A DNA stretch of 64,000 bases from Rhodosorus marinus CCMP1338 (GCA_029953675.1 JAMWBK010000008.1:744001-808000); one strand, 5' to 3'; shown: positions 1,636 to 46,525, counted from the first letter of the stretch. Notes: generated by a model from the sequence alone, not told the origin. Numbers and translations: made by a program.

Positions 1636-3771
1636 TCAGCCTTTCGGCTCTCTGCTCGCCTTCTTCAATCGGGACTTCAGATCATCATCTAATTGAATGT
1701 CCATTTCAATTGCGTTCCTCGCGAGTTCTCGCGCACCGTCAAATCGGTTCTTCTTTAAAAGTGCGATGATAAGAGCTGTGAAAGTAACCTCGTTTGGTTC
1801 TGTTTCATCCGTTCGAAGGTCATGAAACGCCATGATAGCTTCGTCCAGTTCATCAGCGCGAATCAGAGCATTGACAAGTGCGGTATATGTATGCGTGTTC
1901 CTTCGTATTCCTCTCGCTTCCATCTGAAAGAAAGCTTCCTTCGCTCCATCGCCGTCGCCCGCCCGACCTAGGGCGTGTATCAACACCGCATACGTATGTG
2001 CAGTTGGCTTCTTTATGCGTGAGAAACTGTTCCTGACCTTTCCTATGCTTCCCACCACCGAGTAAAGTTTCATCAAGGTCGTGTGCGAGACGTCCGAGGC
2101 CCTAATCCCTTTTCCTGAAAGCGAGGCGATAACTTTCTCCGCGCCTTTGACGTCTCCTCGGCGAGCCATCGCATCCAGAATTATATTGTACGTGCGGTCA
2201 GTCCGATCAATTCCCATTCGATCAAATATCTCAAGAATCTCGTCCACTTTTTCGACGTCTCCAGAACTCGCATAATGCTGAAGAAGTGGATTGAAAACCG
2301 CGGCGTCTAACTTGTCTCCTTTTCTGTCGCCAATGGCTGCCTTCAGTTCCCTTTCCGCACCATTAATATCCCCGGAGTGTACGTAGGAAGCAATCACCGT
2401 GGCTCGAGTGTACTTGCTGACTCGCGCACCGGCATCTTTCATTTCTTCAAGAATTTTTGAAAACTGTGCAGAATTATCTGACCTTGCAAACGCATGCAAG
2501 AGCGAGTCAAACGTTTGAGTGTCGGGTTTGATTTTTGCAGCTTTCATATCCGAAAACACTGCCATCGCTGCGTGGGGCAATCCGGCTTTTCCCAAAGCGT
2601 GTATAATTGCTGAATATGTCTTTGTTGATGGTATTAACCGAGATGTCTTCATTTCCCCAAGGACGGCCTCTACTCGTTTCACATCCCCCACAGAGGCAAA
2701 CGCACATAGAAGAGTGCGATACGCAGACTCAGAAAGCACTCTTTTTCCTTTCCTCGCGGTCTCCAAGACCTCCTCTAGTCTATCCAGTTCACCAGCTTTG
2801 GCATAAGCTCCAAGAAGAATACTGTAGGAAAAGGGATTCAGCCGAATGCCGTCATTTTCCATATCCTCCCTTGTCTTCTCGAGTTTCTCCCACTCTTTAC
2901 TTTCAGCGTACACATTCATCAAGGTATTGTACGTCACAACGTTCGGTCGTATTCCAGTCGACTTCATGTCAGTCAGAGCAGTCTCAGCAGCTCGTATATA
3001 GCCTTTCTTACCAAGAGCGTCGATGATGATACTGTAAGTGACGACATCCGGCGAAAGATCAAACCGCTTCATGAGCCGGAAGTAGTTTTGCATTTTCTTC
3101 ACCATCCCATGGTCGCGAAGGACGCTGAGCAGTATGTTGAAAGTGACATTGTTTGGGTAGATTTTGAGTTCTCGCAGTTCCTGGAACGCCTTTTCTGCAC
3201 CATCAATGTTCCCCGACTTCCCCCGCGCGTTGATGAGTGAGTTGAAAGCAGAGCGGTTGGGATCGAAACCGGATTTCTTGATGGCGGTGAACATGTTCTC
3301 CGCTTTTTCCCATCGCCCCTCCGCAACGTAATACTTCATGAGGATACTGAACGTTTGCACCGACGGCGGGACATGCCGTCGCAAGATTTCTTGATAAACT
3401 TGCTCAGCCGCACTGGATGAGAAGGCATCCCCAAACATCGTCAAAAGCTTATTATAAAATCGAGTTTCTTGTCTGTCACAATCCAAGTTAACCACCATGT
3501 CAAGAGCTCGAGCTTCATCCCCTGTCTTGACCGCCTCAATCAGGGACAACAGCCGGTTTGTAGACGACGAACCCCCGCCAACTCCCGACCCAAGGCCGGC
3601 CCCTGCAGAAAATTCAGCATGTTCCATAGCCTCCGAATGCACCATCAAGACAGTTCTCAACCTGCCCTGTTCGAGGCCGAAATCGCGACCTCGAGTACAC
3701 ACACGAGGCCGTTTTCCGACAACCCCACTTCGCCCGTGGAACAGGCCAACATATGCCATTTCCCCTGCCAT
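1636..3771 (-). CDS. P-class pentatricopeptide repeat protein (PPR1), single exon, probable plastid presequence
   Basis: Long tandem array of 35-aa motifs (e.g. DVVTYSIIIDALGKKGYIRAAETALTDMKSTGIRP, NVVTYNTLMNVYAESK). N-terminus MAGEMAYVG. No E/DYW tail. Confidence 0.93.
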   Translation of the reverse strand: MAGEMAYVGLFHGRSGVVGKRPRVCTRGRDFGLEQGRLRTVLMVHSEAMEHAEFSAGAGLGSGVGGGSSSTNRLLSLIEAVKTGDEARALDMVVNLDCDRQETRFYNKLLTMFGDAFSSSAAEQVYQEILRRHVPPSVQTFSILMKYYVAEGRWEKAENMFTAIKKSGFDPNRSAFNSLINARGKSGNIDGAEKAFQELRELKIYPNNVTFNILLSVLRDHGMVKKMQNYFRLMKRFDLSPDVVTYSIIIDALGKKGYIRAAETALTDMKSTGIRPNVVTYNTLMNVYAESKEWEKLEKTREDMENDGIRLNPFSYSILLGAYAKAGELDRLEEVLETARKGKRVLSESAYRTLLCAFASVGDVKRVEAVLGEMKTSRLIPSTKTYSAIIHALGKAGLPHAAMAVFSDMKAAKIKPDTQTFDSLLHAFARSDNSAQFSKILEEMKDAGARVSKYTRATVIASYVHSGDINGAERELKAAIGDRKGDKLDAAVFNPLLQHYASSGDVEKVDEILEIFDRMGIDRTDRTYNIILDAMARRGDVKGAEKVIASLSGKGIRASDVSHTTLMKLYSVVGSIGKVRNSFSRIKKPTAHTYAVLIHALGRAGDGDGAKEAFFQMEARGIRRNTHTYTALVNALIRADELDEAIMAFHDLRTDETEPNEVTFTALIIALLKKNRFDGARELARNAIEMDIQLDDDLKSRLKKASREPKG

Positions 3772-4385
3772 CACACGGTCAGTCCTCAGCTATCCCGGAA
3801 TCAAGCCATCATCCCTAGCGACCCCCTGAAAAAGTTCAGAGATGGAACCCCACCCAAACCACAGACTTTCCCCTCCAACACCAACCCTCCACACTCCACC
3901 TAAGACGTCCAAGCCAGCCCCCGTCGGTTAAGTACCGCCTCCCCGCTCGTAGGTTAATAGCAAATGTTCTTCAAACCTGCCGGCCAAATATCAAGTTCTC
4001 TCATAAACAGGCTTCAAAAACTATTCTCAAAAGAGGCGATTGCTCTGCATTCGGGCCAAGTTTCCGTTCTTTCGCATACCAATGTTTCTTTTTCCCGGAA
4101 ATATCCAATGTTCCTTGGCCCGAACTTGTATTGTTTCTACCTAAAACGTATGTGTGACCACGAAGAGGGGAAAATCCCCATTTTCATGCAAACAAGAAGA
4201 AGATCCATCTCTCATCATTTCGAGAAAAAAATTAGTGTAAAGGAAAAAATATCTACCAAGGAACGGCAATCTTGGGGACATTCGCGGTCGAGATCGGACT
4301 TACTGGCATATGGATGGCTTTCGTACTCCCGGAGATTTGCGATGGACTACAAATTTTTCTTTAAGGGTCTCAACAAAAATGGGGG

Positions 4386-4720
4386 TATAGTGACTGAATA
4401 GGTCTTAAGTTATTTGGTAACGAGACAAAAATATATTTTGATTGATATATGTATGACTCTTAAAACACTTCGTCCATCTACGACAGAAGACTGCTGGGAC
4501 ATGCGTTTTGGGCTAGTCCGGGTTTCTCCGGAACAAATTTGCTTTAAGTGTCTCCACAAAATTTCTGTGTATAATGACTGAATATACCATAAATTATTTG
4601 GTAACAAGATAAAAATATTTTTTGATTGATATCTATCCGACTCTTAAAATACTTCGTCCATCCCTGCAAGAAAGCTGGTGGGACATGGCTTTCTGGTAGA
4701 CTGGGGTTCTCTGGTATAGA
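4386..4720. repeat. Imperfect AT-rich direct tandem repeat, two copies, period about 184 bp
   Basis: tgactgaata...ttatttggtaacgagacaaaaatatattttgattgatat...cttcgtccatc...gggacatg (from about 4391) recurs as tgactgaata...ttatttggtaacaagataaaaatattttttgattgatat...cttcgtccatc...gggacatg (from about 4575). Confidence 0.8.
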
Positions 4721-7700
4721 GAATGTTGGGGCTTGTCGCCTTTTGACTTTCTTTCGGCTGCGGGAGAGGCGCGGTACGAGAGTCGGGCTTCAAGAGATTG
4801 TTTGACTTACATCAACCTGAAGCGATTGGAAGATGTCCATGTTGCGACATATGCGTCCACCGGGAAGATGAGCCTGAGGCGGGGTTGTCGATCGTGCGAA
4901 GTAGTCATTTTCCAGTGTCTGGTTGGTCGGCCGGAAGCGGACGTACTGATGAGACTCTTCCGTAGAGAAGACTATCTCGCGGGAAGTACAAGCTCCCTGC
5001 GCATATTCCTTCATTGCGTTTTTGCAGTCAAGCCCTCTTCAAGTTGGAAAGAGCATATCTCGCGGAACATTAGACAGCAGTTTTTAGCTGGTACAGGCAA
5101 GGGTTTGTCTGCTTTGTCATTTTTGAAGGTTGTATCCGAAACTTGAGGATACACCTGCAACTGGGTGGGAGCATTCCGCAGCGCCACAGCTGACAAACCT
5201 ACCGACTGCTCGTGAAGAGAATGAGCATCGCCACCGACTACTCGACCTGGTTGCTTTTCCACTTAAGCTGATACTTTAGCCTCTGGCAGCTCGCCTCAAT
5301 GCTACCCTTCTTAAATGACACAATATCGGTAAGTATGAGCTCGTGCAAGTGAGCGACTTACACGGCAACCAAGGGAAACCCGGTGTTTCCCATACATCGC
5401 GGTCCTGAGAAACCGGTCATTTCAGAAACTTTCTATGTGCTGAAGTGAGGGGAACGCGAATCCTACTCTCAAGGCCCTTGGCGGTCAGAGGCCAACAGAA
5501 AACACACCAAAAAATAAGAACAGAGAAAACACAACAGAACGCGAACAGAAAAACACACTACGCTGCTTCAATATGCGGTGCATCGGTTCCAGCCATTAAG
5601 CCGACTGAATACCAGTTCTCATCTGCGCAAAGGTGCGTAAGAGCCTGCTCAAAAAGTATGGAGCAATAGATAGTACGTTTCCGTTCGAGAGTCCACACGC
5701 AAACGGAAGATCAACGCAGGTGCGTCCCCGCCACATATCCTCGGATTCAGATGAATCTATATTTCACACAACCAAAGTTTGCTGAAAAATCAGTAGTGGC
5801 TTTCCACGAATTCACACAGCCAAGTGATATAGGCGAAACACAAGCACGCGCCCAAAAATATTCGTGAATCGAAGTGCGCATCTTTTTTTTTCAGCTTCCA
5901 ACGAGGTTTCCTCAGCTACCAGTTGCCGCACCAACATTAAAGACACTTTGAGACCTTTAGATCCAAATCTAGAATATCAAGCTTCATCAGCTCATCACGA
6001 TCCTGAATTCGCTTTCAACCGTCCTTTATATAGGTAGTATATCCGTCAGAAAACCCACCTACAATAATTAGTCCGGCTCAGCGCGCCCAATGTTCACCTT
6101 GAACCGTTCGCCTGAACGATATGACTCTGTCGCCGTTGCCTGATGGAGCTGTTTTGAGCCGTGCTATTGTAAAATCGTTCCTTGGACTGGATATATCCAT
6201 AAGCAAGAAGCGAGAATGGCCTGGCTTTCGATTCCGCTGAACGGTACACATTGTATAACGAGGACGGTCGCTTATGGGGCAGACTGTTGGAATGTAGGGG
6301 CACGGCAGACCACCGGATAGTGTGTTACGTTTCTGTACATAATTGTTTTTACATTTCAGCTGATTTGTTTTCTCCCAAGGAGCCATCCCCCTCCCTACAC
6401 TACATGTTGGGGCAAACCGGGAAGCCCATTTGTGATCTGTGTTAGTCCGCCGTTCAGAACGGGCCTACAGTTGGCCAGCCGCTTTCCTAGATTTCTGGAA
6501 GCAATTAGAATCGTGTATTTCGTGGAGCAAATTCCTAGATGGATTTCTTTCGGAAAACGTAAGATTTAAGCACGGGCAGGACACGCGGAGAGCTGCAATC
6601 GTCTGAGCGCTCCGTTTCTACCCCTCGTCCGGAGAGAAAGCCCGTCCGTCGTCACGTAGGAATTTGTTACGTAGTGTTAAGCGTTCCTCACGGGGGACCG
6701 TTCATCTGGTAAAATCCAATGTAGTCACTATCTCAGTCTTTTTTGAAAGAGCAGCTGTATTTTTTTCACCGTAAGAATTTCTAAACTAGAGTCAATCAAT
6801 CAGCTAGTCACTTTCATATCGCCCCATTTCGCCCCCTCCCGTTCTGCTCTAGAAAGCGTTAATTCAATGCCGGAATTCCAACACAGTCCGAACGCCTCGA
6901 GAATCACTATTGATCTCTGTAAGCGAAGAAACTGTGATTTCCGTCTTTCCCTGTTCCATACGCAGTATCGGTTGAAACCGGCGATATTTTCTTTGGCCAC
7001 ACCGATTCCCCCCCCCCCTCGCACCACCTGGCCGTGCGCTTGGAGGCGAGAACCCTATTTCAGGAGCAAAATTCAACCTTCAATTGAATTCTAGAACCTC
7101 CCGGAATATGCCAAGTATACAAGGACCTGTTCGGAATTTGATGAATCCGTCCATCAGGACCAAGATCAGTGAAATCTTTGTCCTTAGTTTTAGCAAAAAG
7201 GACTAGAAAATGAATTACGATACATCTATCGCCCCCTCTCCCCCGCCTCAGCCCAGCCGAATCCCTTGACTTTGTACACAGTATGACTAGCCTCCAGGGC
7301 TGTCGGCGGAAAAAGTGTACTTTTGACGGCTTAATGGCTGAGTTTCTCGACAGCCCAGTAAACAGCCTCCTTACAGCACGTCTGATCAATACAAGAGTTT
7401 TTGTAGAGAAATAGGCACATAGGGTGTTTTGAAGGTGAAATTAAGGAGAATTTTTTTTTGGGGGGGGAGGAGCCTTGAGCATGAATCGTTCTAGATGGAG
7501 ACAGTGAGGCGGTGAGAGACTTAGCATTTAGCCAATTCGTTCGAAGTTTGGAAATGGAGGAGGCGTTGCTTCCTACTCCTTAACGAATTTGTTTTCCAGA
7601 TTTTCTGAAGAAATATTTTTCTTTTTTTTTCTTTTCTTTGCGCCAGGGGGGACAAGGAAATCGATCAAAATCGACATCCTAAAGGTGGGGGCCAACGCCA

Positions 7701-8086
7701 AGGGTAGTGCTGGTTTCAAGTTTTTTTCTTCAATTTTTTAAATTGGGTATCTAGTTTTGGGCAATTAAGCAGCGCCAGTGTAATGAGTGGTTGGACAATG
7801 GAATGGGTACGTACGTAGAGGGTCAAAACATTATGATCGAAAATCTGGTTGTGCTGACGAATAACTCTCCAAAAGTAAATTTTAAACTTGGGAATTGAGT
7901 GTCCCACCAAGCTGTGGAAATTGCAACTCTGGTTGTTACAGTTGCGAATGGGGCTTGAGTTTAGAGATTATATAACAGAAACCAGTGGAGCTTGTGGATG
8001 AGTGGGGAGGAGAGACAGTCTTCTCGCAATGGATAGTTGACAGGAGAAGGATTGTGCTTGAAAGTTAGCTTGTCTGTTAATGCGGA

Positions 8087-8665
8087 ATGATGATGGAGCC
8101 CGTAGCGTGCTTTGAGGATGAGGAGTTCATGCCTATGAATGAGGAGGACTTGGTTGCAGCAGTTGGGGAGGCGCTGGATACGAACTGCAGCGATGAAGAC
8201 CTGGTGGTTGGAACAACGATTCCGCGATCCTTCTTCGGAACTAGGAGGCAGGGGTTCTCGTTGAAGTCCTATGTAAAGAGATTGTACCAGTACCTTGAGT
8301 GTTCCAAGTCTGTCTTCGTCACGGCTTTGATATATCTGGAGAGGATTCAGCTGGCGAACCCAAGCAACAAATTGACGGATTTCAACGTGCACAGAATGTT
8401 CTCCACTGCCATCTTGTTGGCACTGAAGTATCATGATGATGAACATTATGCAAATTCTTATTATGCGGAAGTTTTTGGAATGCGAGGATTGAATGAGATT
8501 AACCATCTCGAAGCAAGAATGCTCACCATGTTGGATTTCCGCCTCGGCGTGACTGAGAAGGAGTACACTTACTGCAAGAACCATTTGATGCAGACGCAGA
8601 TAAGATTACCGGCTCACTCTGTCGTTGAATTCAACACGACCAACATGGTTATCTCCGCTGCATAG
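8087..8665 (+). CDS. P/U-type (PHO80-like) cyclin
   Basis: SLKSYVKRLYQYLECSKSVFVTALIYLER, FNVHRMFSTAILLALKYHDDEHYANSYYAEVFG and EINHLEARML..LDFRL match the cyclin-P/U box. Confidence 0.92.
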   Translation: MMMEPVACFEDEEFMPMNEEDLVAAVGEALDTNCSDEDLVVGTTIPRSFFGTRRQGFSLKSYVKRLYQYLECSKSVFVTALIYLERIQLANPSNKLTDFNVHRMFSTAILLALKYHDDEHYANSYYAEVFGMRGLNEINHLEARMLTMLDFRLGVTEKEYTYCKNHLMQTQIRLPAHSVVEFNTTNMVISAA

Positions 8666-10379
8666 GTTTGTGAATATGCATGCATACCTTGTATATTGTG
8701 CATAGTGTTAAGTTATTACATATGATTATTAAACAAGAAGAGCTTGATGAAAACTCAGTCCTCACCATGACTTAAGCGAATGAGATGCTTGGGATTATCG
8801 AAATGTGCAGGTCGCACCCCTTCTGAGTTCCCAATCTTCCATGTTCTCCAGACAGTGATCCTGTTCTATACGATCGTGTTGGTGAGGTCACATCGGAACA
8901 CTCGGCAACAGAGCGTTGCGCAGTCCAGCTCGTATCGAGCGGAAACGGAAAGGTGAGGATCCAAGGAGTTTTCTGCGACTGAGAATTGGCTTCTGGTCGC
9001 ATCGCAGGCGTTCGCGGACCGCGGAAATTTTGAGAAGGAACGGAATCGTGACACTGAACATATGCAGCTTATTTCTAATACATCCTGCTGTTGTGGAAAT
9101 CGTGTGAGGGTTGCCATGAGAGGATCCTGTGAAAGAGCCGAAGAAACGTGGTCGTGAATACGCGGGAAAGGGGGCTTCGCGGATCTGCACAATATTGAAG
9201 ACGCTTGCTTTTCTTTGATGAACCTAGCACGAAAGATTTTCCGCCAAAACAAGACATCTCAAAATACGTGTACAGCTGATTGAGAATGGCAACCCATGCG
9301 AAGCTTTTGGGACAAAAGGCAGGGCCCCATCTCCCTGAGGGCTGACATGCACTCTACATATCTGCGACGTAAGAGCAGACGATCACCAAAACCCTCCAAA
9401 CCGTGTGCGCGATAAAGGGAGTCAACAGGACGGCTTATTCACACCTACGTATATAATGCTGCCGTTAGCAATCGAGAAAAATGTATGCACTTTGACAGGA
9501 AATTGTTCAATGGAAACCCACAACACGCAACAAATCAGGACATTTTAAAGAGCCTGCATAGCCTCCAAAAGCGTCCAAATCGATTCGGGGTTAGGTAGAT
9601 TCCCACTTCTTAATGTAAAAATTAAACAATTACAAGATAATCAGTATTCTTCCGTTGGGTCTACGGTATTGCTAATTTTCCGCAATTCATTATAGCGGGA
9701 TATCGTCCTCGACCCATCTTCCAACTACGACGTACTTTTTTCTTTAAAACTTCCTCTTCGTCAGATGAAAATACGATTTTTGATTGCGAAATGACTGTAC
9801 ATGGCCGGGTACACGAACATTACTCTTGATAAAGAAAAAGCAACAAAAACAAAAGGTCGAAGAAGAATCTGGTCCTCATCGATGTGCTTGCTGGGACGGG
9901 CCCTTCTTACTAGCTAATTTCATGGTTTCCATCAAACTCCTGCCGTAGCGAACAAATTTTCAAGCTTCTATGGAGTTCCAAGCGCCTGCCTATAAATCCA
10001 CCTCAAAATATTATCTTGTACTTAAAAATTTTAATACCTTGGATTCCAACCTGTTCCCCATGTTACAGATTGACTTTCCGGCCCGGATTGAGACTCAACA
10101 CTCTGAGGTCGATTTTTTTTTGGACTCTCTGATTGGTAAACTGGTCTAGGTCGGCAGTCCCCCCCCCCGGATAGCCAAGCCTTGTGGAGTTAATTGGGTA
10201 AGTATATATTTTCGTAGAAATTCATCAATAAAAACTGGAACAGCGAATCAGAGAAATGCTTCTCCAGCCCGTAGTCAACTGGAATACCTATTGGTTGCTC
10301 GGAAACGCGTTTGCTGTCCGTGCATGTGAAATTTCAAGGGCGAGGAGGGGCATGAAGTGGGGAGGTTTCCTTATTGATG

Positions 10380-10870
10380 CTACGCGTGTGCGTGTCCACT
10401 GATACGATGTAGGGGATGAAAGTTGTGAGGACAGCCCGTGAGACTCCTCTCGAGTAGCGGACGACATTCTGTGATTTTCGGCGTCTGCCCTGTCTCGTGG
10501 TTTTTGATGAGGATAGCGTATGATTTTCTGTATCTGGCGAGAATCAGGGGTTCTTGCTCAAAAGCTTCGGAACGCATTCGACGGCTGCCTCAGGCAATGG
10601 GTAAGAGTACGGAGAAGCGATCGGAACAAATCGGAAAACTTTGTTTTGGCTTCGATGGCTAATACGTGACATTCCCAACCCATCCAGTGAAAAACCCGTC
10701 GGTCGAGACATTTTCCTCTCAGGGTTGTGGTCTCTAAGTACACGGATGATGACTATGACACAATTTGAGTCTAGGTAGATAATAGAATAAAAACGAGACC
10801 TCTTGAAGTGTGGACCCCAATTCCCTCTCCCAAGCAAACGAAAAAACTTCCCGTCATTACATTTGCACCT
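10380..10870 (-). pseudogene. Putative decayed Ser/Thr kinase relic
   Basis: Kinase-like motifs in order across two frames: FFRLLGRGNWG (Gly loop), SQNKVFRFVPIAS (beta5/hinge), LPEAAVECVPKLLS (alphaE), AILIKNHETGQTPKITE (beta7-8), SLTGCPHNFHP (activation segment end). Catalytic residues are lost. Confidence 0.45.
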
Positions 10871-11656
10871 TCGGCCCACAAACCACAATTTAGGTTCATC
10901 GACCACTGTTTTGACTGCTCGCTGCTCTTTCAGAGGAGAACCCAATTCCAGCCAGACATAAGTCTGTCCATTCGTCCATTCAAGGCTTGAGGAGTGCAAA
11001 GTTTGCACGCCACGCAGACTGCCTCTTAAGTTTCCAGCCTGTCCCACAGGACGACTCTCTGCTCCCCGACTATTTTGTACCAACGTCCAAATTTCTTTAT
11101 TCAAACTAAAAAACCTCCCCTGTCAAGCAAACGGGTTTGGAAAACAAGGGTCCTGAATTGGCGCATCTCGCGATCTCCTCTTTACCCCCAAAAAGGACAT
11201 CTGTTCAAAATTAATGTTGGACATCTGTATTATTCTGCTATTTCTAAAATTCTGTTTTCTAACTTGGTCTAAATTTGTGAACCGTTGCCGCTGGAGATTT
11301 ATTTTCGATAGGGTCGATTGCAGTCGATGTTTGTAGCGTATATCTCATATAATATAGGTCTTGTAAATATTTTAAGAGTAATTATTTACTGTATAGATGG
11401 TTGATAACATTGTGAGCAAGGTGCTAAAAAAAATTCGGTTTGGTTATTGCTATTGGGGGCTTGGGGATGGAGCTCTGGGTGATCGGGCTGGGAATGTTTT
11501 TGGGCAGGAGCCGACTGAAGTACTCCGCAACTCGTGCTTTTGCCACGGTAGAAATGTGAGAGAAACTTGTGTTGATGTTGCAGATGTGCTAAAAGAAAAA
11601 TGGAGGTGGCTCTCGTTTGGCAGGGGAATTGGGTAGCATGGTTTGGTGAAAAGTAG

Positions 11657-16769: not shown

Positions 16770-18758
16770 CTAAAGCTGCTCTGGATCCTTATCCGCGATT
16801 TTCCAGTCGTGTTCGTGCGCCCGGCCATCGAGCAGCTCCCTAGCCCGTTCCGGTATCTCCACCCCATAAATCTCAGCTTCCCTCACAATATGCTCGGCCC
16901 CCTCAAACATTCCTGCTCTGAAGAGATTCACAGCCAGTGTCGTATACGAAAAAGAATTGGGGTCCAACCCGTCCAAGCGCATCTCATCCAGAAATCTGTG
17001 GGCCCTTCTGAATTCCTGGTTCTTGGCAAGGGCATCCACCAGCGCGCCGGCAACGACAAGGTTGGGTTCCACCTGCTCCTTCTTCATGTTCTCGTACGCC
17101 TCCACTGCAGCGTGCACCTCTCCAGAGTTTCCCAACGCAGATATGAGCGTGCTGTACACGATTTCGTTCCGTTTAAGACCTGCCTTTTCGATATCGCAGA
17201 ATAATTCCTTGACGAGGTCGACCTCACCACACTCGCGGTGAAGCTTCATAAGGGTCGCGTAGCCAATAAGCCCCAGCGTGGATTTGCATCGTCGCAGTTT
17301 CACGGACAGCGCCGATGCCTTGTCCAGCTCTTTGGCTCGAATGTAGGCATCCAACAACGTGCAGAGCGTCGTTTCGTTGGGGCGCATTCCCATTCGCAGC
17401 ATTTCGCTAACGAGGCTCTCAGCCTTTCGCGGATCGCTCCGAAACGCCTTCAAGAGCGCATTCCAGGCAGGTACTGTGACGGGAACATCCGTCTTGGTGC
17501 TGGCCTTCTGCAGCAGAGCGTGTGCAGCGTCTACACATCCGCAAGTCGTGAGCGCGTTCACTGCTGCGCAAACTTGCTCCTCACGCAGCCCCGACTCATC
17601 CTGTCTGAGCTTGGCGAGACACTTCAAAACTTCCATCGCGTCTCCTCGCAGGGCATAGAACTTGATCGCCGTTAACAGAATAACTTCATTGGGCTTCACC
17701 CCATCCGAAATCATGTTCGCCATCGCCGTCCCAGCTTCTTCCATTTTCCGTTCCTCAACGAGGGCGCCAATTAGAATGGCATAGACGTACGCATCGGGAC
17801 GAACCCTCATCCGTCTCATAACTTGGTAGTTTCGTTGGATCTCAGCTACGTTCTTCTCATCTGCGCATGCTGACATTATCGTCGCAAACGTTGCCGCTGT
17901 TGGTATGACTTCATCTTCCTCCATCGCCTTCAGAACTAGATGTGTCTCAGAAACCATACCCGCCTTGCAGTAAGCGTTGAGAACGGTGTTGTACGTAGCC
18001 GCGATCCTCGGTATCTCCCGCTCCTTCATGGTATCGAGCAAGTCCTCAACCTCAGCGACATTTCCGCTCCTCGCGTGTACCTTCATTACCTCAAGGAAGG
18101 TCACAGCATTTGGTCGCACTGCCATGGTGTCGATGATCTCTCTCGCCCTATCCAACTGCCCGTTCGATGCGTAAGTGCCGATCAAAATCGAAAAGCTAAT
18201 CACGGATGGCTCCATATCAGCGCTTGCAAACCGCTCAAAAGTATGGACGACCTGATCCAAATCATTTCTCGCTGCGTAGAGCTTCATCATCGTGTTAAGG
18301 GTGACCACATCCCACCGACGCATACCCGCAAAAAGCTTCTCTGCTTTGTCGCCCCGATCCTGCTTTACGAGATGATTCAATCTTCTGTTCATGTTCACAA
18401 TACCCATATCAGTTGAAGTCCTAACCTTTGCGTTTGATGATTTCCGAACTTCAGCTTTAGTTTTTGATGATTCCCTGCCCTTCCCATCACTAGATTTTCC
18501 AAGTTTTGAATCTGGCAAGGTCCTAACATCCGCGTCAGCGGGAGATACAGCCTTTGGTTTTTGGGGGCCTCGAACTTTGGCGTCCGTGGAGGTTCTAGTC
18601 TTGGCATCCGCCGTGGTCGAGCTCCAAACCCTCGCATCCTTCCGAGCGACAATTGGCCTGGAGCTAGCCGTCACCATGCAAACCGTCCTATTCCATATCG
18701 AATACCTCACCGGACTCCACGGACAAGAGACAGTCACATAAACCAACTCACCCCTCAT
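16770..18758 (-). CDS. P-class PPR protein (PPR4), single exon, with low-complexity 8-aa repeats in the N-terminal region
   Basis: Motifs DVVTLNTMMKLYAARN, SVISFSILIGTYASNG, ATYNTVLNAYCKAG, NEIVYSTLISALGNSG. Confidence 0.93.
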   Translation of the reverse strand: MRGELVYVTVSCPWSPVRYSIWNRTVCMVTASSRPIVARKDARVWSSTTADAKTRTSTDAKVRGPQKPKAVSPADADVRTLPDSKLGKSSDGKGRESSKTKAEVRKSSNAKVRTSTDMGIVNMNRRLNHLVKQDRGDKAEKLFAGMRRWDVVTLNTMMKLYAARNDLDQVVHTFERFASADMEPSVISFSILIGTYASNGQLDRAREIIDTMAVRPNAVTFLEVMKVHARSGNVAEVEDLLDTMKEREIPRIAATYNTVLNAYCKAGMVSETHLVLKAMEEDEVIPTAATFATIMSACADEKNVAEIQRNYQVMRRMRVRPDAYVYAILIGALVEERKMEEAGTAMANMISDGVKPNEVILLTAIKFYALRGDAMEVLKCLAKLRQDESGLREEQVCAAVNALTTCGCVDAAHALLQKASTKTDVPVTVPAWNALLKAFRSDPRKAESLVSEMLRMGMRPNETTLCTLLDAYIRAKELDKASALSVKLRRCKSTLGLIGYATLMKLHRECGEVDLVKELFCDIEKAGLKRNEIVYSTLISALGNSGEVHAAVEAYENMKKEQVEPNLVVAGALVDALAKNQEFRRAHRFLDEMRLDGLDPNSFSYTTLAVNLFRAGMFEGAEHIVREAEIYGVEIPERARELLDGRAHEHDWKIADKDPEQL

Positions 18759-20785: not shown

Positions 20786-22696
20786 TCACTGCGAACTCTC
20801 CCTCCTTTTCTTGTTCGTTTCCGCAGATAAGTTAGTGTCGCCTGGAACTTTTATACGAATCTTAAGCCCCTTGCGTCGTGCTTCCTTCTTGTAGCAACGG
20901 GCATCATCGAAAAGCCCGTGTCCAACTAGAAAGGTGATTATGGTCTTGTAGGTCACGGAGTCGAACCTGAGCTTTGATTCTCTCATCGTGTGCATATACC
21001 GCAACACTTTCTCCACATTGTTATCCTTAACATACCCGTGAAGCATACAATTGAGCGCCACAACATCAGGCTGCAGCTTGTACTCCCGAAAGTATGAGAA
21101 TGCTTTTTCCGCTGAGACGAGATTTCCGACCTTCACGTAAGCAGATATGAGGATGTTGATTCCGTAGTTGTCAGGCTTCAAACGATCCCTAACAATCATC
21201 TGCTCCCATGTCCTCTCCAGTCTATCTATCATTTTATGGGTTTTGTACACGTTCATCATCTGATTGTAGGAAAAAATAGTCGGCTCAACGCCGGACCTCT
21301 CCATCTCGTTGAACGTCGCCTCCGCAGCCCCTACTGACACTTTTCCCAGGGCGAAGATCAGAGCATCGTATGTATAGACCGTAGGCTTTAGCTTGTCTGT
21401 TTTCATCTCCTCCACCAGGTCGATTACCCGACGAAGGGAGCCCGCCTTGGCATGAGCCCTGATCAGAGTGGCATACGTTGTTGTGCAAGGGGAGATTTGG
21501 GCGTTTTCTCTCATGTCCTCTAGCACGGCCTCGGCCGCTTGGATATCCCCCAGCCCAGCATACGCTTGAATTGCGTAGTTAAAGGCCATATTGTTGTCAA
21601 AGTCCCAGTTGTATGACCCCATAGACCGGAAGAGCTTAATTGCTCCAGCGTAGTCTTGACACTGAACCAACGCGGCAATTGTGGCCGCATAGGAAATGTA
21701 GCTCAGTGATTCCGTCGGAAATGACTTGTAGAATTCCCACACCTGCTCTGATTTCTGCAATTTGCCAAGACTGGCCATTAGCAAGGTCACGCAGTGTTCG
21801 CTTGGCTCGACCCCAAGTCCTCTCATCTTCCGCACAGTTTTTACAACATCCTTATGCTGACCCTTCGCTCGCTGCGCCTTCATAATTACAGACCACAAAT
21901 ATACAGAAGGCGTCAAGTTCCTTGCCACCATTTCCTTCAGGGTTTTCCTGATTCCTCTCCAATCGTAGATCTCGCAAAGAGATCTTACATATACAGTATA
22001 AGTGTAGTCCGTCGGCTCAAGCTTTCGCCTGTGGACTATTTCCATCGTCTCCGCAACTAGGCCATACTGCTTGTCCAGTAAATATTGATTCATCAGCGTT
22101 GTGAAAGTCACTATATCCGGCACCAGCCCATGTTCCTGTAGGATCCTGAATTCTTCATCAACAGCCTTCGTGTGATTGTTTCGCGCGAAAAGATCCAGGT
22201 ACATGTTCGCTGCCCAGGGGTCGGGTACTTGACCCTGCGCCAACAGTGACTTAACCAAAGCCTGCAGCGGACCCAGATTTCCCTTTGTAAAGTACCAGTG
22301 AATCATGATCTGGACACTCTCCTTCTCGATTGAGTCTGCGACAGCGGTGAAGGTATCCTCCGCCTCCTGGTGCGGGCTATCGCAGTGCAAGATGTTGACC
22401 ACGTCCCGGTGGAGCTTTTGATCATCCACACTCGCGGAATTGGCCTTCTGCAATATTCTCGCAGCATCCTGAACATTTCCAGAGTCCAAGAGCTCCATAA
22501 ACCGAGCACTTCGCTCCTTGTTCTCCTTCTTCCCGACTTCCGCCTTCAACCGCACCTCCAGGCAGCATCGTGGTGCTGCCTGGCACCTACGTTGGGGCAT
22601 CACGCCAGGCCCTCCACATACAACCCAGGCCATCGCAAAGCTACCCAAACCCCCCCCCCCGGCCCCCCCCACCCCCCGAAAAGCCAGCTGTTCCAC
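20786..22696 (-). CDS. P-class PPR protein (PPR5), single exon; start uncertain (GTG 22696 or ATG 22633; G-homopolymer region)
   Basis: Motifs DIVTFTTLMNQYLLDK, TTTYATLIRAHAKAG, TVYTYDALIFALGK, DVVALNCMLHGYVKDN. Confidence 0.92.
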   Translation of the reverse strand: MEQLAFRGVGGAGGGGLGSFAMAWVVCGGPGVMPQRRCQAAPRCCLEVRLKAEVGKKENKERSARFMELLDSGNVQDAARILQKANSASVDDQKLHRDVVNILHCDSPHQEAEDTFTAVADSIEKESVQIMIHWYFTKGNLGPLQALVKSLLAQGQVPDPWAANMYLDLFARNNHTKAVDEEFRILQEHGLVPDIVTFTTLMNQYLLDKQYGLVAETMEIVHRRKLEPTDYTYTVYVRSLCEIYDWRGIRKTLKEMVARNLTPSVYLWSVIMKAQRAKGQHKDVVKTVRKMRGLGVEPSEHCVTLLMASLGKLQKSEQVWEFYKSFPTESLSYISYAATIAALVQCQDYAGAIKLFRSMGSYNWDFDNNMAFNYAIQAYAGLGDIQAAEAVLEDMRENAQISPCTTTYATLIRAHAKAGSLRRVIDLVEEMKTDKLKPTVYTYDALIFALGKVSVGAAEATFNEMERSGVEPTIFSYNQMMNVYKTHKMIDRLERTWEQMIVRDRLKPDNYGINILISAYVKVGNLVSAEKAFSYFREYKLQPDVVALNCMLHGYVKDNNVEKVLRYMHTMRESKLRFDSVTYKTIITFLVGHGLFDDARCYKKEARRKGLKIRIKVPGDTNLSAETNKKRRESSQ

Positions 22697-24176
22697 CTCA
22701 CATGACAGTCCACAGCTACAGCCTAAACCCCACCAGCAATCCCAACGACGATCTCAAACCGAAAATGATCCAGTCATCCACCTAAGCATGTAACCACCCC
22801 TCCACCTCGGCTTCTCCACTCTAATCAATACTTCCTCCAGCTTCTAGTCTTGACCAGAAAAAAAGTGCCATCTACCATCAAGCTCTTTCACAATAGAACC
22901 CCCTACTCATGAACATAACCTAACCCCAAAAACCCATCCCCGCCACCCAACCCCCAAACTACCTACTCTCACTAAAAGGGTTTACCCCCACCCTCCTTGT
23001 CAAACTGCTTAACATTTTCATGGAAAAAAAAAACGCGCGATGCTTAGGATCTGCTTTTCACAATGACTCCACGGACGATCTCCCACCCCTCGGCGATCTA
23101 ATTCCTAACATTTCAGTAAAAACAGCCAACATCTTTTTGTAAAAACAGAAAGTGGCCCAACGAAGGAAGGGGGGTGGCCCGGCCAATGTTCCTGCCCCTT
23201 TCTAAATCTGCTTGAAAAGTAATTGCTAAAAACAACTTGGCCTCCCTATATGGGCCATTTTTTTTTTTTTTTTTTGTTTTGCTTTTGTGCTCACAGGGTT
23301 CGTGGCCAAGGGACTGTTTTTTACTTTTGTGCCAATGTTCTTTTTGGCCCTGTGGTTTTTTTTGGTTTTGTTTTTTTTCCCATTCTCAATGGCCAATGTT
23401 CCTTTTGGGCCAATGGTTTCGAAATTATCGGTGATGTTCTTACGTTCCAAGTGCTTGCTAAGCAGCTTTTGGGCTTTTCCGGCATCGCGAGTTGTTCAAG
23501 GACTACTCCATGCTACCATGGTCTGCACGGATATCCGTGCATCCTTTTTACGAGGAGCTGCAAATTTTTCCAGCTGACGGTATCGCTTTCCATACCAGTG
23601 GCCCACACTCTGTGCAGCTGCTGTAGGCTGGAATGATTCTCGTGAGGAACAGAGATAGTCGTACTCTTCTGAACAAAGACGAAACGTTGTGAACATTTTC
23701 GTCATCAATTTATTCAGAGCCGATCTACCCGGGCCTTTTTCCAGATGCAGCTTCGGTTGTGCATGTGAACAAGGACGGGGGCAGACTTGCTGGCACAGCC
23801 CTGGATCCTGAGGTCCCGAAATTAACCATGCAGGCGTTCCGCGTCCGCGCGTGGCATGTTAACTGGTTTGTTTTCTCCACGACTGTCACGCTGTATTCTG
23901 CAGCGCCGGCAGGTCCCCCATGGCAAGAGCTTCAACTCCTTAACATTCTACGGGCAGCTCGTAAGTTGCGCGCACGGTGCTTTCATGTGGTACTTCGCGA
24001 GGCCAAGCACGGGCGTGTAGCTGTCAAATTAAGAGCCAGTGATGGGGTTGACTACAAATTCAATGTGTTAATTTTGTGGCTGGTTTATTCAATCGACAGA
24101 AGCCAGGCTACAGCAGGAGATGGTTGAACTGTACAAATGAGTTTGAATAATGTGCAATTAGCCAAACAACATAATC

Positions 24177-30834: not shown

Positions 30835-31354
30835 ATGGTAAACTGGTTGCTGATGGCCCTGCCACTCTCGACAATTGCAGGGCTTCTTCCTACGATCAAC
30901 AAGCTAACGCTTTGCCTGAAAGGTGGTAACTTTGACCCGAAGCTGGGCCGAGACAACCTCCAAGCGTCGAAAGCTGGACTGGACACGGAGAATTTCGCCA
31001 AGATAATTCGATGTGCGAATGCCGAATCCAACTTTTACGAAAATTGGCCAGTTTATGCCGCGGGAGTGGTGAGGAAACCCCCATACATGCCGTTATCGCA
31101 GAAGCAGGGTGCCATGTTTCTCATAGGTTGCTTTGGCAAATCTTCCTCTTCACGTACAGCTTGCCGTCAACTTCACCCCTGGAGTCCCAAGACTTGCCTG
31201 CTTGGGCCTGGCGTATGGGTGGATCGGCGCTCGTATTTTTTACAATGGTTTCTATATCTACGACAAGGCCCGACTTCGTACCCCAGCCTTCATGGTCGCA
31301 ACTACTATCTCCTACGCCCTGCTTGTTACTGCGGGTCTGAACTCCACATTCTGA
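30835..31354 (+). CDS. MAPEG-family membrane protein (exons 30835-31068, 31160-31354; about 142 aa)
   Basis: RCANAESNFYENWPVYAAGV spliced (gtgagg...cacgtacag, 91 nt) to LAVNFTPGVPRLACLGLAYGWIGARIFYNGFYI...RLRT. This matches the MAPEG pattern R..NAH.N..E.FP.FAAAV...AR..Y...Y. An alternative acceptor at 31126 is possible. Confidence 0.8.
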
Positions 31355-35437: not shown

Positions 35438-35704
35438 AAATCTCGAAACCGGAGCAAGTATGTTATGGAAGAGACTGTGTTAAGGCGGGACACAGTATAG
35501 GATAGGACACAACAGCATTGCTCGAGCTAAAAGCCACTCGTGTGGTATCTTCTGTAGATATGTTTCCTTTTACTAGACTGACAACAGAGTAGTGCTGAAA
35601 ATTTTTCTTAACAAAAACGACATCAGACCGTATGATCGTGAACTCTGTCACGAAGCTCGCTTGTCATCATCCTCAAAACGAGCGAGTAGATTCCCCACGA
35701 GGAG

Positions 35705-39959: not shown

Positions 39960-40416
39960 ACGAGCCCGGTTCTTAGCCCGTGGTCCAGTTGCTGGGGAGG
40001 TTGCCGAGTCCAATTGGTGAACGAAAACCGCAAATGAAGAAGAAGAGGTCTTGACCGTTGCACGCAACGACACTCTTTCATGAAACAAGTCTGGTTTGCA
40101 TTATTGTAATCCCCGTAGCTGTCTCGGTCTTAAGACCAAGGAGTGCCTTTCAGTCTATATAGCAAAGAACTAGCTCTTCATAAGCTCCCGGATTGCGAAG
40201 AAGTATTACATTCAGATGGAGTTTCATGTGACAGATCCAATTCCTCTGCAGAGCCTCTAGCAGATCAGTGAGAATCCCGTGGCTAGCGGTTAACGCACTT
40301 CGGGGTTGCGGACAGAACTTCGAGAGCGGGGTCATGATAAACTCGAGGAGTTTGCTCAAACCAATCGCTCCTACTGGCTTTTCATACGCGGAACTGATCC
40401 TCCCAAAATACCCCAA
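39960..40416 (-). pseudogene. Putative decayed Ser/Thr kinase relic (C-lobe), clearest example
   Basis: One frame through two stops: SKLLEFIM, ILTDLLEALQRNWICHMKLHLNVILL (cf. LEYLHRNGICHRDLKPENILL), LVLCYID*, LKTETATG, *KSVVACNGQDLFFFICGF (cf. DVWSCGVILF..LCGF). Confidence 0.55.
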
Positions 40417-40576
40417 AAGTTGAAGTCATGTCTAGTTGGAACCTCCTTGAATGCAAAGCAGGCATAGGCTCTCACAACAGTGTCGTGGAGTGGGACCGTC
40501 AGGACCTAAGCTTCTTCATCTGCGGCTTTCGTTCACGACTTGGAAGGGGCAACCGCCCCAGCTACTTGTACTACGG
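39978..40576. repeat. Diverged inverted repeat, arms about 39978-40102 and 40450-40576
   Basis: The reverse complement of the left arm (agtgtcgttgcgtgcaacggtcaagacctcttcttcttcatttgcggttttcgttcacc...ggcaacctccccagc) aligns without gaps to the right arm (agtgtcgtggagtgggaccgtcaggacctaagcttcttcatctgcggctttcgttcacg...ggcaaccgccccagc). Roughly three quarters identical over about 97 nt, by eye. Confidence 0.85.
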
Positions 40577-40813
40577 TGCTGGCTCAAACGTGAAGAGAAG
40601 CAGAGAACAGCGGTTGTGTCAAAGACCATCAACCGTACCAAAGCAGCCTCAATGCAGCACCAGTTTTGGCTGGGAGATTCCTAGGGATTTAGTTGTGCTT
40701 GACAGAGCCTTGGTTTCTTATCGCTTTGCTTTCGAGTGGACTTGGGAGGGGTCAATTACGGAGGATTTGTTCTGAACGATGGGAAGTAGCTTAGCACCCA
40801 AATCTTTGCGAGG

Positions 40814-42907: not shown

Positions 42908-44257
42908 TCCCCCACAGGCCGTAAAAGCTTGTAAAACCTCGCAATCCCGTGGTATTCATGTGAATTCCGATGTAGATGATTAGTAGGGATGTATTAAGCT
43001 GATCAGACCACTGCCAAGCAGTAACCAGGATTGGCTTTGGTCCGAGTAGGAACTCAGCACATAGGATGTAAGAGTAGCACAAAACAAAAGAAGAAATCTG
43101 GCAAATCAATTTATACTAAAAACTAAAGCATCTTCTTAGTATATTGATATTTATTTTCAATACATGATAGTCGCCGTTGATTGATGAAAGAAACATAACT
43201 AGTATTTATCCGCTTGCTCGTAGAACTACGATTTTTGAGTAAATTTGTTCACTCCGAAGACATTTTTGTCCCAAAACGAAAACGGCTTCTGTGAATTGTT
43301 TTCTAAATACTCTGCTTTTGTGGAGATTGGACTGGGTTTTGGAAGAATTGGTTCCGGGACGGCGTAATTTATTAGGAAAAACAGTTTTATTCTGGCCGGG
43401 GGGATTGGCATGATAATATTTGCTTTCGTGCCGGTATGGCGGACTCCTTGAGCAAGCCAGCTTAATGAAGGAGTCGATTGCGTGTCTGGAAAATCTAAGA
43501 GAAGCCGATCATTTGCTCAACAGGACAGAGCTCTGGACAAGATGCGGGTCCTCTTCAAGGGACCAACTCAAATACCCTCGCGCTCTCGTCCCACTTTACC
43601 AACGTTGGTGCTGATTCCTCGCCATACATGCGAAGCACAGAAGACATTCAAGAAGAGACAACAGCAGTGTTAGCTGGTAAATAACGGTGCTTCATGCCAA
43701 CTTCCCCATTCGTTTAGTTGTTCAGTTCACATCGACGTACAAGCTCGCCACCGTACAAAACCTAAACCGCAGTCGTAACGGAGATGGTGCACAAATCATA
43801 TGGAGCTTTCAAATCATTCAGAGTGAAAAGACAATCTTCATGAATCACGTCCTGCCCAAGTCTGCGTGAGCGGTTTAGACGGAATCTCAACGTCCCGGCG
43901 CTCGTCACAACACTGACGGCAAAAACCGTCTCCCCGGCAGGATAAAGTTTACAAGGTAAATTTATCTATAATTCTTTTAGTCCGAATTATATGAGCAGAA
44001 GGCTCAAATCGCCTACAGAAGTCGAAGTAATCTCGATTTGTATTGAAATTATTTTCATAATTTTTGTTTTTCGGTTGCCGTTGCGGTGGTCATGGAGGAA
44101 ATGGATGTGTGAGAAGGGGGAAGCAGATGAACGATGGGGAGATGGAAATCTCTTTAGGAATGATGGGTGTCGAGCAGTTCTGACAGGTTTTATTCGTTTG
44201 ATAAGACTAAGGTTATAAAGTGATTCTTCCAAATTTGACTGAGCCTAGGGATGTAAA

Positions 44258-46525
44258 ATGATGGAGCTGAGGGAAACTGGTATTGGGTTCGCTGGCACTG
44301 TCAGGGTTGGTGGTTTGTGTGAGAATGGCAAGGCCGTCGGAGTTTGCAGGGAAAGGAGGAGGTGGAAGGTGGATGTTAGAAGAGGTGATAGGTCCCGGCT
44401 AATGATGGCGATCAGTGAAGATAGAAAGATGGAGTTGCTGATGAGGAAGAAGCCAAAGTCATCGTTTGTTGAGATAAAGGAGATTCTGAACCTGTTGAGA
44501 CAGGGATATAACAAGTCTGCGTATGTGGCATACATGCAACTTCGAAGAGCGAAGCGTAAGGTGATCACCCGTCCTCAGTATATCTACCTCACCGACCAAC
44601 TGGGACGTCACCACGGACTGCATACAGCTAGAGTTGTCTTTGATGACATGCACCGCAAACACAAGGCATGCGCTCATGGGTTTAACACGCTTTTGAAGGT
44701 TTACGCCGATTCTGGTCATCCCAGAAAGTGCAGAAACTTGTTGGATGAGATGGAAACGAGGTTTGTCACTCCCGATGCGACGTCGTATACGATCCTCATG
44801 CAAGCGTGGTTGCAGAGAGGTGAAATGGATGAGGCATTGGGTGTCTACGATGAGATGGTAGCAGCCAGCATAGAGCCAAACTCCATGACTCTGGAAGTGC
44901 TAATGAAAGGTTTCCTTGCACAGAAGAGATACAAGGCTGTTTTAGCAGTCGACGAGAGCCGCCACGAGTACACGGGCCTTCATGCAAACACTGACGCCCT
45001 CGCTGTTCTCATTCGTGCAAATGCGGCCCTCAAGAACGTTGACAAAGTCCGCGAGAGCTACGAGCTGATGCTGGCCAACTTCGAGGAGTATCGAGTTTGG
45101 AAAGTCGAGGAGGATGCGAGGATTGCCGCCGAAAAGGAAGAGCAGGCACTTCTCGCCGAGAAGGAGGCGGCTGCAGCTGCAGAAGCACTCGCCCAAGCAG
45201 CGGCTGCTGGTGACGTAGGGAACGAAGACTGGGAGTCTGAGGACAGCCTCGAGGAAGTGAAATTGCCGGAAAGCCGCAAGCCCTTTGTTGTGAAGAAGGA
45301 GAAGCAAGCAGAGCGACCTCCGCCTCTGGTGAGCACCATATTCGGAGACGTGGATGACAGTGAGTTGGAAGAGGACTTTGAAGCGCTTGATGACGAGGAG
45401 GCCGCAGACGAATTTTACGAAGAGGATGATGAGGGTTATGAATTCGATGAAGACCAGGACGAAGAATCACGGAGTGCCACGAAGAGAAAGCCTAGACCAG
45501 AATGGCCAGCAACCGTCAAGCTCAACGACAGTGGATTCATTGCCGTGTTAGAAGCGTTCAGCGGGAGACCCGAGGAAATCCACCAAGTCCTCTCAGATAT
45601 GGCGAACAGCCCCGTCCCGCTAACCATCGAAGTGCTGAACGCCGCCATGCTGGGATTCGTGGACGGAGAAGACCTAAACGGCGTCCGTTGGATCTTCGAC
45701 AAAATTGCTGAAGATGATTTAGAGTACCCCGCTCTGGAGGTGCTCAAGCTGAAACTTCGCGGGTTCAGTGCTCTCAACGACCCTGAAGGTGTCTCCCAGG
45801 TGCATCAGATCATGATCAACGGGAATGAGAAACCCGACAAGTACCTCATGAACCTGTTAGTTGACTCCTACAGGCTCTTGGAGCTTCCGACTATGGCAGA
45901 AAAGGCCTTCGAAGAGCTTCGTGGTCTCGGCCTGAAAGGGAACTTGGGAACGTACAACATACTTCTTCAAATGTATGCTGATCGAGGAGCTCCCGAGGAT
46001 GCTGAAGGGGTCATAGACAGAATGACTCGACGCAAGCTTCGAGGAAACACGAGGTCCTACAATCTACTCCTGCAGGCCTATGCCAATGCGGGGGACAGAG
46101 ACCAGTTGATTCCACTATTCCAGAGAATGCACAGCTCAGAAGTTCCCGCAAACGAGCTCACCATGGGAATCCTACTGGACACCATTCTAGAAGGCGGAGA
46201 TGACGAACTTATTGACAATTTGAAGGACGAATTTGATCGAATGGGGGTGGAATGGTCTGAAGCCATGCTGGAAAAGGCTGCGAAATACTACAGTTCCAAA
46301 CCAAACCCAGTAGACGGTCTCGCCGACATGTCTGAACGATTAGCCCTGAGGGAGGAACTCCAGTTGGAAAGCCTTGGACCATTGCTCTCCGCACTGATTG
46401 CGAGCGGCAATCAGACGAGGGCCGAGATATTCATCGAAACCTTGGAAGAGAAGGACCCAGACGACGAAATGTACCAGCAGAAAATCGATGAGCTGTTGAG
46501 AACACAACTAGTAGGAAAACAATAG
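44258..46525 (+). CDS. PPR protein (PPR11), single exon, with a central acidic insertion; probable plastid presequence
   Basis: GIGFAGT near the start. Motifs DATSYTILMQAWLQRG, NLGTYNILLQMYADRG, NTRSYNLLLQAYANAG. A D/E-rich block splits the array. Confidence 0.9.
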   Translation: MMELRETGIGFAGTVRVGGLCENGKAVGVCRERRRWKVDVRRGDRSRLMMAISEDRKMELLMRKKPKSSFVEIKEILNLLRQGYNKSAYVAYMQLRRAKRKVITRPQYIYLTDQLGRHHGLHTARVVFDDMHRKHKACAHGFNTLLKVYADSGHPRKCRNLLDEMETRFVTPDATSYTILMQAWLQRGEMDEALGVYDEMVAASIEPNSMTLEVLMKGFLAQKRYKAVLAVDESRHEYTGLHANTDALAVLIRANAALKNVDKVRESYELMLANFEEYRVWKVEEDARIAAEKEEQALLAEKEAAAAAEALAQAAAAGDVGNEDWESEDSLEEVKLPESRKPFVVKKEKQAERPPPLVSTIFGDVDDSELEEDFEALDDEEAADEFYEEDDEGYEFDEDQDEESRSATKRKPRPEWPATVKLNDSGFIAVLEAFSGRPEEIHQVLSDMANSPVPLTIEVLNAAMLGFVDGEDLNGVRWIFDKIAEDDLEYPALEVLKLKLRGFSALNDPEGVSQVHQIMINGNEKPDKYLMNLLVDSYRLLELPTMAEKAFEELRGLGLKGNLGTYNILLQMYADRGAPEDAEGVIDRMTRRKLRGNTRSYNLLLQAYANAGDRDQLIPLFQRMHSSEVPANELTMGILLDTILEGGDDELIDNLKDEFDRMGVEWSEAMLEKAAKYYSSKPNPVDGLADMSERLALREELQLESLGPLLSALIASGNQTRAEIFIETLEEKDPDDEMYQQKIDELLRTQLVGKQ

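Follow-up and report, generated by a model that had tools for sequence, protein, structure and literature searches.

An island of eleven divergent P-class pentatricopeptide repeat genes in the red alga Rhodosorus marinus

What is a dense group of pentatricopeptide repeat (PPR) genes doing in a red alga? Red algae have been described as poor in PPR and other helical-repeat organellar factors, and have therefore been suggested to regulate their organelle genes unlike green plants (PMC13126933). We analysed a 64,000-nucleotide stretch of DNA, hereafter the window, from Rhodosorus marinus CCMP1338 (contig JAMWBK010000008.1, assembly GCA_029953675.1); position 1 of the window corresponds to about position 744001 of the contig. 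Positions 1636-46525, ~45 kb of nuclear sequence, hold an island of eleven PPR genes, named P1 to P11 in their order along the window. The island is a solid observation with overwhelming clustering statistics, and the function that we infer for it is plausible. Its eleven nuclear P-class PPR genes, each with a single exon, are probably an old array that was retained locally; their products would be mostly sequence-specific RNA binders of the plastid, and the island points to a previously undescribed set of probably plastid RNA-handling factors.

Gene content, class and edges of the island

An initial annotation of this DNA had taken its source for a probable red alga. The source is indeed a member of the Rhodophyta (Stylonematophyceae), and the protein of a neighbouring gene co-clusters with MMETSP and EukProt sequences of Rhodosorus marinus. 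The genome of this species was published alongside the minicircular mitochondrial genomes of Stylonematophyceae (PMC10250338); it has 31.19 Mb, 8392 genes, and 24,821 introns, or ~3 introns per gene. The NCBI gene calls and Pfam bear out the earlier count of 11 PPR genes among the 13 genes between positions 1636 and 46525, the other two being a cyclin gene and a MAPEG gene. The genes are arranged as P1, cyclin, P2-P7, MAPEG, P8-P11, and the mixed orientation noticed before is found again, with the strands reading - (+) + + - - - - (+) + + + +, where the brackets mark the two non-PPR genes.

All 11 open reading frames (ORFs) score above the curated cut-offs of the Pfam clan families for PPR (PF01535, PF13041, PF13812, PF12854, and PF17177), and ten of them do so strongly, with PPR_2 E-values from 1e-31 to 1e-103. 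The weakest is P7, which reaches 44.7 bits for PPR_3 against a cut-off of 25 and 36.6 bits for PPR_2 against a cut-off of 30; in the Protein Data Bank (PDB), designer PPR proteins and PPR10 match it at E = 1e-30 to 1e-16. Judged by these matches, P7 is a weak but real PPR protein.

The start-to-start spacing of the motifs is 35 residues almost throughout, with isolated spacings of 31-32, and the motif hidden Markov model (HMM) revealed no P-L-S triplets and no alternation of long and short spacings in any array of the island. The C-terminal tails that the initial annotation had reported missing are absent: no DYW or SMR match was obtained with Pfam in the 11 proteins, and the single E_motif match is internal. 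This match, at residues 280-314 of P1, is marginal (27.9 bits against a cut-off of 27.3) and, lying within the repeat array, does not represent a C-terminal tail. Past the last motif, the proteins end in 16-70 residues without a domain. The 35-residue period, the lack of a P-L-S pattern, and the lack of a catalytic tail together assign the proteins to the P class. RNA-editing factors of the PLS-DYW type were considered and ruled out, as there are neither DYW domains nor P-L-S triplets.

The span of every one of the 11 PPR genes equals 3 x (aa + 1), where aa is the number of residues encoded; hence, none of them contains an intron. Introns are present in the neighbouring helicase, MAPEG, RPL34e, exchanger, and dehydrogenase genes. 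A PPR motif HMM made from the window sequences was run on the six frames of the window and of fetched flanks. Motifs were confined to the 11 ORFs, with 3 to 16 in each protein. The spacers, the 17.5 kb that follow the island on the right (46.5-64 kb), and ~8.4 kb of flank beyond the left end of the window were free of motifs; therefore, the edges of the island are sharp. The same six-frame scan showed no fragments or pseudogenes in the island, and all 11 genes are intact. The island is bordered on the left by a DEAD-box helicase gene and is followed on the right by two EDR2_C genes and by genes for RPL34e, a Na/Ca exchanger, and an aldehyde dehydrogenase.

The clustering implied in the initial annotation is far from random. 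The probability that a run of 13 genes includes 11 or more PPR genes is 2e-13 if the genome has 182 PPR genes and still 3e-5 if it has 1000; both totals are assumed values, and the probabilities are corrected for ~8380 windows of 13 genes. The GC and GC3 contents of the PPR genes equal those of the neighbouring genes, and by this match the island genes are native nuclear genes. This composition, the length of the contig (2.1 Mb), and the existence of a related transcript make it unlikely that the island stems from horizontal transfer or is an artefact of the assembly. An Rfam scan of the window gave no match, and the ORFs in the large spacers carry no Pfam domain.

Divergence and orthologues of the island genes

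How old is such an array? The initial annotation had seen no near-identity among the genes, and this holds at the protein level: in an all-against-all BLASTP of the 11 proteins, the best long pairwise alignments have 20-26% identity, and the single higher match between paralogues has 33% over 131 residues. Beyond short motif-level matches, no DNA repeats were found between the PPR genes, whereas the adjacent EDR2_C pair shows 75% nucleotide identity. The 20-26% identity of the paralogues and the absence of inter-gene DNA repeats are incompatible with a recent tandem array.

Orthologues were found for two members. P1 has an orthologue (P0008) in Bangiopsis sp. CCMP1999, which belongs to the same class, with 49% identity over 89% of the length, and P6 has a full-length orthologue (P0042) with 46% identity in the Logan assembly of run SRR22824290. 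An exhaustive HMMER search of 1.84 billion representatives with P6 returned no ortholog-grade match besides P0042; the matches below it were generic PPR proteins, for example from Closterium and Selaginella. More than 90 unrelated representative proteins outranked P0008, the orthologue of P1, in this search, so that the island paralogues are as distant from each other as any two P-class PPR proteins. A search of P2 that was restricted to shared five-residue words gave no homologue above 27% identity, and seven island proteins joined as one query of 4375 aa gave nothing at E <= 1e-40. The word-index searches with P1 and P2 were dominated by plant PPR proteins and returned no R. marinus paralogues. 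None of the searches with P1, P2, and P6 indicated orthology to any plant PPR protein, the identities of 22-28% being at the level expected from the shared repeat alone.

P10 shares 90% identity, and a 90% cluster, with an MMETSP transcript (P0002), and the EDR2_C protein encoded at 48888-49688 shares 94% with an MMETSP protein of Rhodosorus marinus. These two values indicate that a related strain transcribes P10 and that the rate at which P10 evolves is only slightly above that of the neighbouring gene. The inspected position-5 residues are identical between P10 and P0002. The same identities of 90% and 94% also show considerable divergence between the sequenced strains, which may be cryptic species.

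L006 of SRR22824290, the contig with the P6 orthologue, is 3.4 kb long. The 1 kb upstream of the gene contains nothing that resembles a PPR gene, but P6 and P7 are separated by a longer spacer (1275 bp), so that this kilobase is uninformative on synteny. An Illumina adapter remnant (ACACGACGCTCTTCCGATCT) occupies positions 1-20 of the contig. A metagenome scan for P6 orthologues with flanks gave no confirmed match.

The literature agrees with the earlier statement that PPR sets are small in red algae: fewer than 10 PPR proteins per species were counted in five red algal reference proteomes (PMC13126933), and 8-182 PPR genes across glaucophytes, rhodophytes, and green algae (PMC13386178). The term expansion, used in the initial annotation, stands insofar as the 11 genes of the island exceed the figure of fewer than 10 per species; however, they represent one locus and not a genome-wide count, and the detection criteria differ between studies. 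The term independent is likewise half supported. The orthologues of P1 and P6 were found just in Bangiopsis and run SRR22824290, with none for P2 in the word-limited search, and this restricted distribution fits a lineage-restricted set, but a fast divergence of older genes would look identical. It is also conceivable, though less likely, that stylonematophyceans evolved, separately from land plants, an enlarged nuclear P-class PPR set, gathered in one or a few islands, that would supply the missing trans-acting factors for both maturase-less plastid group II introns and minicircle transcripts. The genome paper (PMC10250338) does not mention PPR, its supplements have no PPR or Pfam entries, and no paper in the literature searched combines pentatricopeptide with Rhodosorus, Stylonematophyceae, or Proteorhodophytina.

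Predicted targets, destination and origin

Each 35-residue motif of a PPR protein reads one RNA base via its residues 5 and 35. The canonical 5/35 pairs (ND, NN, NS, NT, TD, TN, SN, and SD) dominate in P1, P2, P3, P6, and P10. The targets predicted with the 5/35 code differ for every protein, such as UUUYCYCUGU for P2 and UGUA..CUAGUUU for P3, and a tally over them gives ~64% A+U. Such a 5/35 pattern is as would be expected for sequence-specific binders of single-stranded RNA with separate targets.

In rhodophytes and glaucophytes, plastid-targeted proteins bear an aromatic, usually phenylalanine-based motif at the extreme N-terminus (PMC7038456). An aromatic residue followed by V or A is found within the first 3-14 residues of P1, P3, P4, P5, P6, P8, P10, and P11, and arguably of P2. 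The motif is kept in the orthologues, as MAVGFAAAAG in P0008, WGFVWP in P0002, and MMEAFCSGGG at an internal methionine in P0042. From these N-termini, we infer that 8-9 of the 11 proteins are imported into the plastid; P7 and P9 possibly go to the mitochondrion. The annotated N-termini of P4 and P8 may differ from the real ones. The annotated P4 product, of 635 aa with its start at 18677, omits an in-frame upstream ATG worth 27 residues (MRGELVYVTV, of the aromatic plastid type), and for P8 (33248-35437, +) an alternative ATG lies five codons upstream of the annotated start.

The plastid offers candidate substrates for such proteins. All sequenced plastid genomes of the Proteorhodophytina have at least 27 introns, mostly small and without an intron-encoded protein (maturase), the positions of which are largely common within Stylonematophyceae (PMC8995046); these introns are the candidate substrates in the subphylum. 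The mitochondrial genomes of Stylonematophyceae have about one intron (PMC8995046), and that of R. marinus consists of minicircles with 11 coding sequences (CDSs), among which nad5 is perhaps trans-spliced (PMC10250338). Hence, the intron-rich organelle genomes invoked in the initial annotation hold for the plastid but not for the mitochondrion of this class.

In the mechanism that we propose, each gene would give rise to an alpha-solenoid protein that binds its own single-stranded RNA sequence in an organelle, and the proteins, having no catalytic tail, are proposed to act as passive binders. Their likely jobs would be to shield transcript ends, to set processed ends, and to open RNA for translation, or, alternatively, to keep maturase-less group II introns in a splicing-competent form. 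The plastid-type N-termini, together with the candidate intron substrates of the plastid, favour a role in plastid RNA stabilisation, processing, translation, or splicing for most members, and two would have mitochondrial roles. As for its origin, the array would most likely go back to tandem duplications of ancient date, after which blocks would have been inverted and the copies would have diverged to saturation.

Judged from their sequences, the island proteins are ordinary P-class PPR proteins, and the closest structural and mechanistic model is maize PPR10. Like PPR10 and other land-plant P-class proteins, they have tandem 35-residue motifs, canonical 5/35 pairs, an N-terminal extension, and no catalytic C-terminal domain, and are encoded by intronless genes; PPR10 and designer PPR proteins were the top PDB matches in the searches with P7 and P9. 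Land-plant P-class proteins such as PPR10 confer stability on plastid RNA and influence how it is processed and translated. There are also differences from land plants: the island belongs to a red alga, a group with reportedly very small PPR families; the import signal is of the aromatic rhodophyte type; and the genes lie in one dense cluster, whereas land-plant genes are dispersed. In the RFL clusters of angiosperms, P-class PPR genes are likewise adjacent and in mixed orientation (PMC5075784), but they are closely related, rapidly turning-over paralogues accompanied by pseudogenes, acting in mitochondria and subject to diversifying selection. The island shares the clustering with the RFL type but not the close paralogues with birth-and-death turnover: its members are 20-26% identical, all intact, mostly plastid-looking, and at least two of them have one-to-one orthologues. 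The NCL cluster on chromosome 15 of Chlamydomonas is another algal nuclear gene cluster for helical-repeat organellar RNA binders (PMC8226300, PMC8635915). The OPR repeats of its proteins have 38-40 residues, compared with 35 in the PPR motifs of the island. Furthermore, NCL members are recent, similar and rapidly turning-over paralogues, whereas the Rhodosorus genes are anciently diverged.

Several results weigh against an old array of plastid RNA binders that arose by local duplication. Neighbouring PPR genes are not more similar to each other than distant ones (permutation p = 0.53), the island members are not closer to each other than to plant PPR proteins, and there is no signal in the sequences that the eleven genes came from local duplication. 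A k-mer comparison of the 11 upstream regions gave no shared motif beyond that of shuffled sequence and so lends no support to co-regulation. Many 5/35 pairs in P4, P5, P8, P9, and P11 are non-canonical, and some tracts of these five proteins may bind protein, or RNA loosely. The targeting call depends on a short motif and on the Porphyridium literature.

Could the mitochondrion rather than the plastid have shaped the island? It might be a piece of a genome-wide PPR expansion in Stylonematophyceae, with most proteins mitochondrial, driven by an aberrant mitochondrial genome of high-copy minicircles, very divergent high-GC genes, and apparent nad5 trans-splicing, in parallel to the PPR-rich dinoflagellates, kinetoplastids, and diplonemids. 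For R. marinus itself, the mitochondrial genome has been documented as minicircular and fast-evolving, possibly with trans-splicing, the 11 genes are already above the per-species counts of other red algae, the orthologues of two members were found only in Bangiopsis and run SRR22824290, and the arginine-rich N-termini of P7 and P9 look mitochondrial. We nevertheless consider this unlikely, since 8-9 of the 11 N-termini have the aromatic plastid-type motif, conserved in orthologues, and since a mitochondrial genome with just 11 CDSs and about one intron stands against it. The A+U-rich targets (~64%) also contrast with the GC-rich minicircle genes, but this argument is weak because the PPR code is biased towards pyrimidines.

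Two further explanations concern the origin of the cluster, and both appear improbable to us. The island might be a fast birth-and-death cluster, a reservoir for selecting new RNA specificities against changing organellar transcripts, as the clustering of helical-repeat RNA binders typifies RFL (PMC5075784) and NCL (PMC8226300, PMC8635915). P2, with no detectable orthologue in the word-limited search, and P10, somewhat more diverged from its MMETSP counterpart (90%) than EDR2_C (94%), are in line with it, but there are no similar paralogue pairs, fragments, pseudogenes, or inter-gene DNA repeats, P1 and P6 are each matched over the full length by one orthologue (46-49% identity), the inspected position-5 residues are the same in P10 and P0002, and the targeting appears plastidial rather than mitochondrial. 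Alternatively, dispersed PPR genes, such as retrocopies, might have been gathered by rearrangement and held together by a co-regulating chromatin domain. Against such gathering, no upstream k-mer is shared beyond the shuffled level, no retroelement or poly(A) remnants were noticed, the ORFs in the gaps have no Pfam domain, and the chance assembly of eleven homologous genes is far less parsimonious than ancient tandem duplication; it is favoured by the lack of introns in 11 of 11 genes, compared with ~3 introns per gene genome-wide, and by the lack of both an adjacency-similarity signal and any indication that the genes of the island belong to a single clade.

Our preferred interpretation remains an old array that was retained locally, and the locus bears on the view of red algae given at the outset. 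With eleven intact, divergent PPR genes at one locus, the PPR-poor picture is incomplete for at least one mesophilic red lineage, in which the plastid genomes contain introns and the mitochondrial genome is aberrant and minicircular. The island provides a small candidate set for the handling of maturase-less plastid introns and organellar transcripts in red algae, and a case in which to ask what keeps the genes of an anciently diverged family physically together. If the enlarged stylonematophycean set considered above is real, organelle gene expression that relies heavily on PPR proteins would have originated a second time, in the red lineage. If there are few PPR genes elsewhere in the genome, nearly the whole of a deeply diverged family would sit at a single locus, which would also be unusual.

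Coordinates and minor features of the locus

Table 1. Features of the island and its surroundings, in window coordinates. Single motif counts, and the lower value of each range (for P7, the whole range), are motifs >10 bits under the window-derived HMM.
Feature	Position	Strand	Description	N-terminus	Appearance of N-terminus
Island	1636-46525		~45 kb, nuclear		
P1	1636-3771	-	711 aa, single exon, about 15-16 motifs, Pfam PPR_2 E = 2e-103	MAGEMAYVGLF	aromatic + V/A close to start
Spacer	3775-8089		4.3 kb, without gene calls		
Direct repeat	4349-4692		160 nt, 74% identity		
PHO80-type cyclin	8090-8665	+	191 aa, non-PPR		
Spacer	8666-11656		3.0 kb, without gene calls		
P2	11657-13444	+	595 aa, single exon, 10 contiguous motifs	..RIFSAWVT	aromatic plastid-type motif arguable
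P3	14431-16185	+	584 aa, single exon, 11 motifs	MDLSFVASGP	aromatic + V/A close to start
P4	16770-18758	-	662 aa from first ATG, single exon, 12-13 motifs	MRGELVYVTV (first ATG)	aromatic + V/A close to start
P5	20786-22633	-	615 aa, single exon, about 10 motifs	MAWVVCGGPG	aromatic + V/A close to start
P6	24177-26237	-	686 aa, single exon, 14-15 motifs	MIGFVAPN	aromatic + V/A close to start
P7	27513-29066	-	short PPR protein, 517 aa, single exon, 2-3 clear motifs at residues 312-416	MISAMLSRRILRF	mitochondrial-looking, arginine-rich
MAPEG-family protein	30835-31354	+	142 aa, intron-containing, non-PPR		
P8	33302-35437	+	711 aa, single exon, 12 motifs, two blocks	MEGLGFVGGA	aromatic + V/A close to start
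P9	37368-39446	+	692 aa, single exon, 7-8 recognisable motifs, strongest C-terminally	MMLSRVYSAWPRRRL	mitochondrial-looking, arginine-rich
P10	40814-42907	+	697 aa, single exon, 11-12 motifs	...SCGFVCPSG	aromatic + V/A close to start
P11	44258-46525	+	755 aa, single exon, 5 motifs	...GIGFAGTV	aromatic + V/A close to start
EDR2_C (DUF1336)	46684-47484	-	tandem gene		
Direct repeat	47673-47925		98 nt		
EDR2_C (DUF1336)	48888-49688	-	tandem gene		

The coordinates of the genes and of the neighbouring features are listed in Table 1. The cyclin gene is bordered on both sides by unusually long spacers without gene calls; the larger one contains a direct repeat, and its ORFs have neither a Pfam domain nor a PPR motif. 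Several island genes have upstream regions that are G-rich on the sense strand, and a long G-run (GGGGGGGGCCGGGGGGGGGGG) lies at about 22640-22700, immediately upstream of the annotated start of P5. In P11, an acidic, Ala/Glu-rich low-complexity insert at residues about 280-420 separates two PPR blocks and is unique within the island. The tandem EDR2_C genes directly adjoin the island and form a clear duplicate, with 300 nt at 75% and 52 nt at 88% identity at a spacing of 2204 nt; a direct repeat (Table 1) is located between the two.

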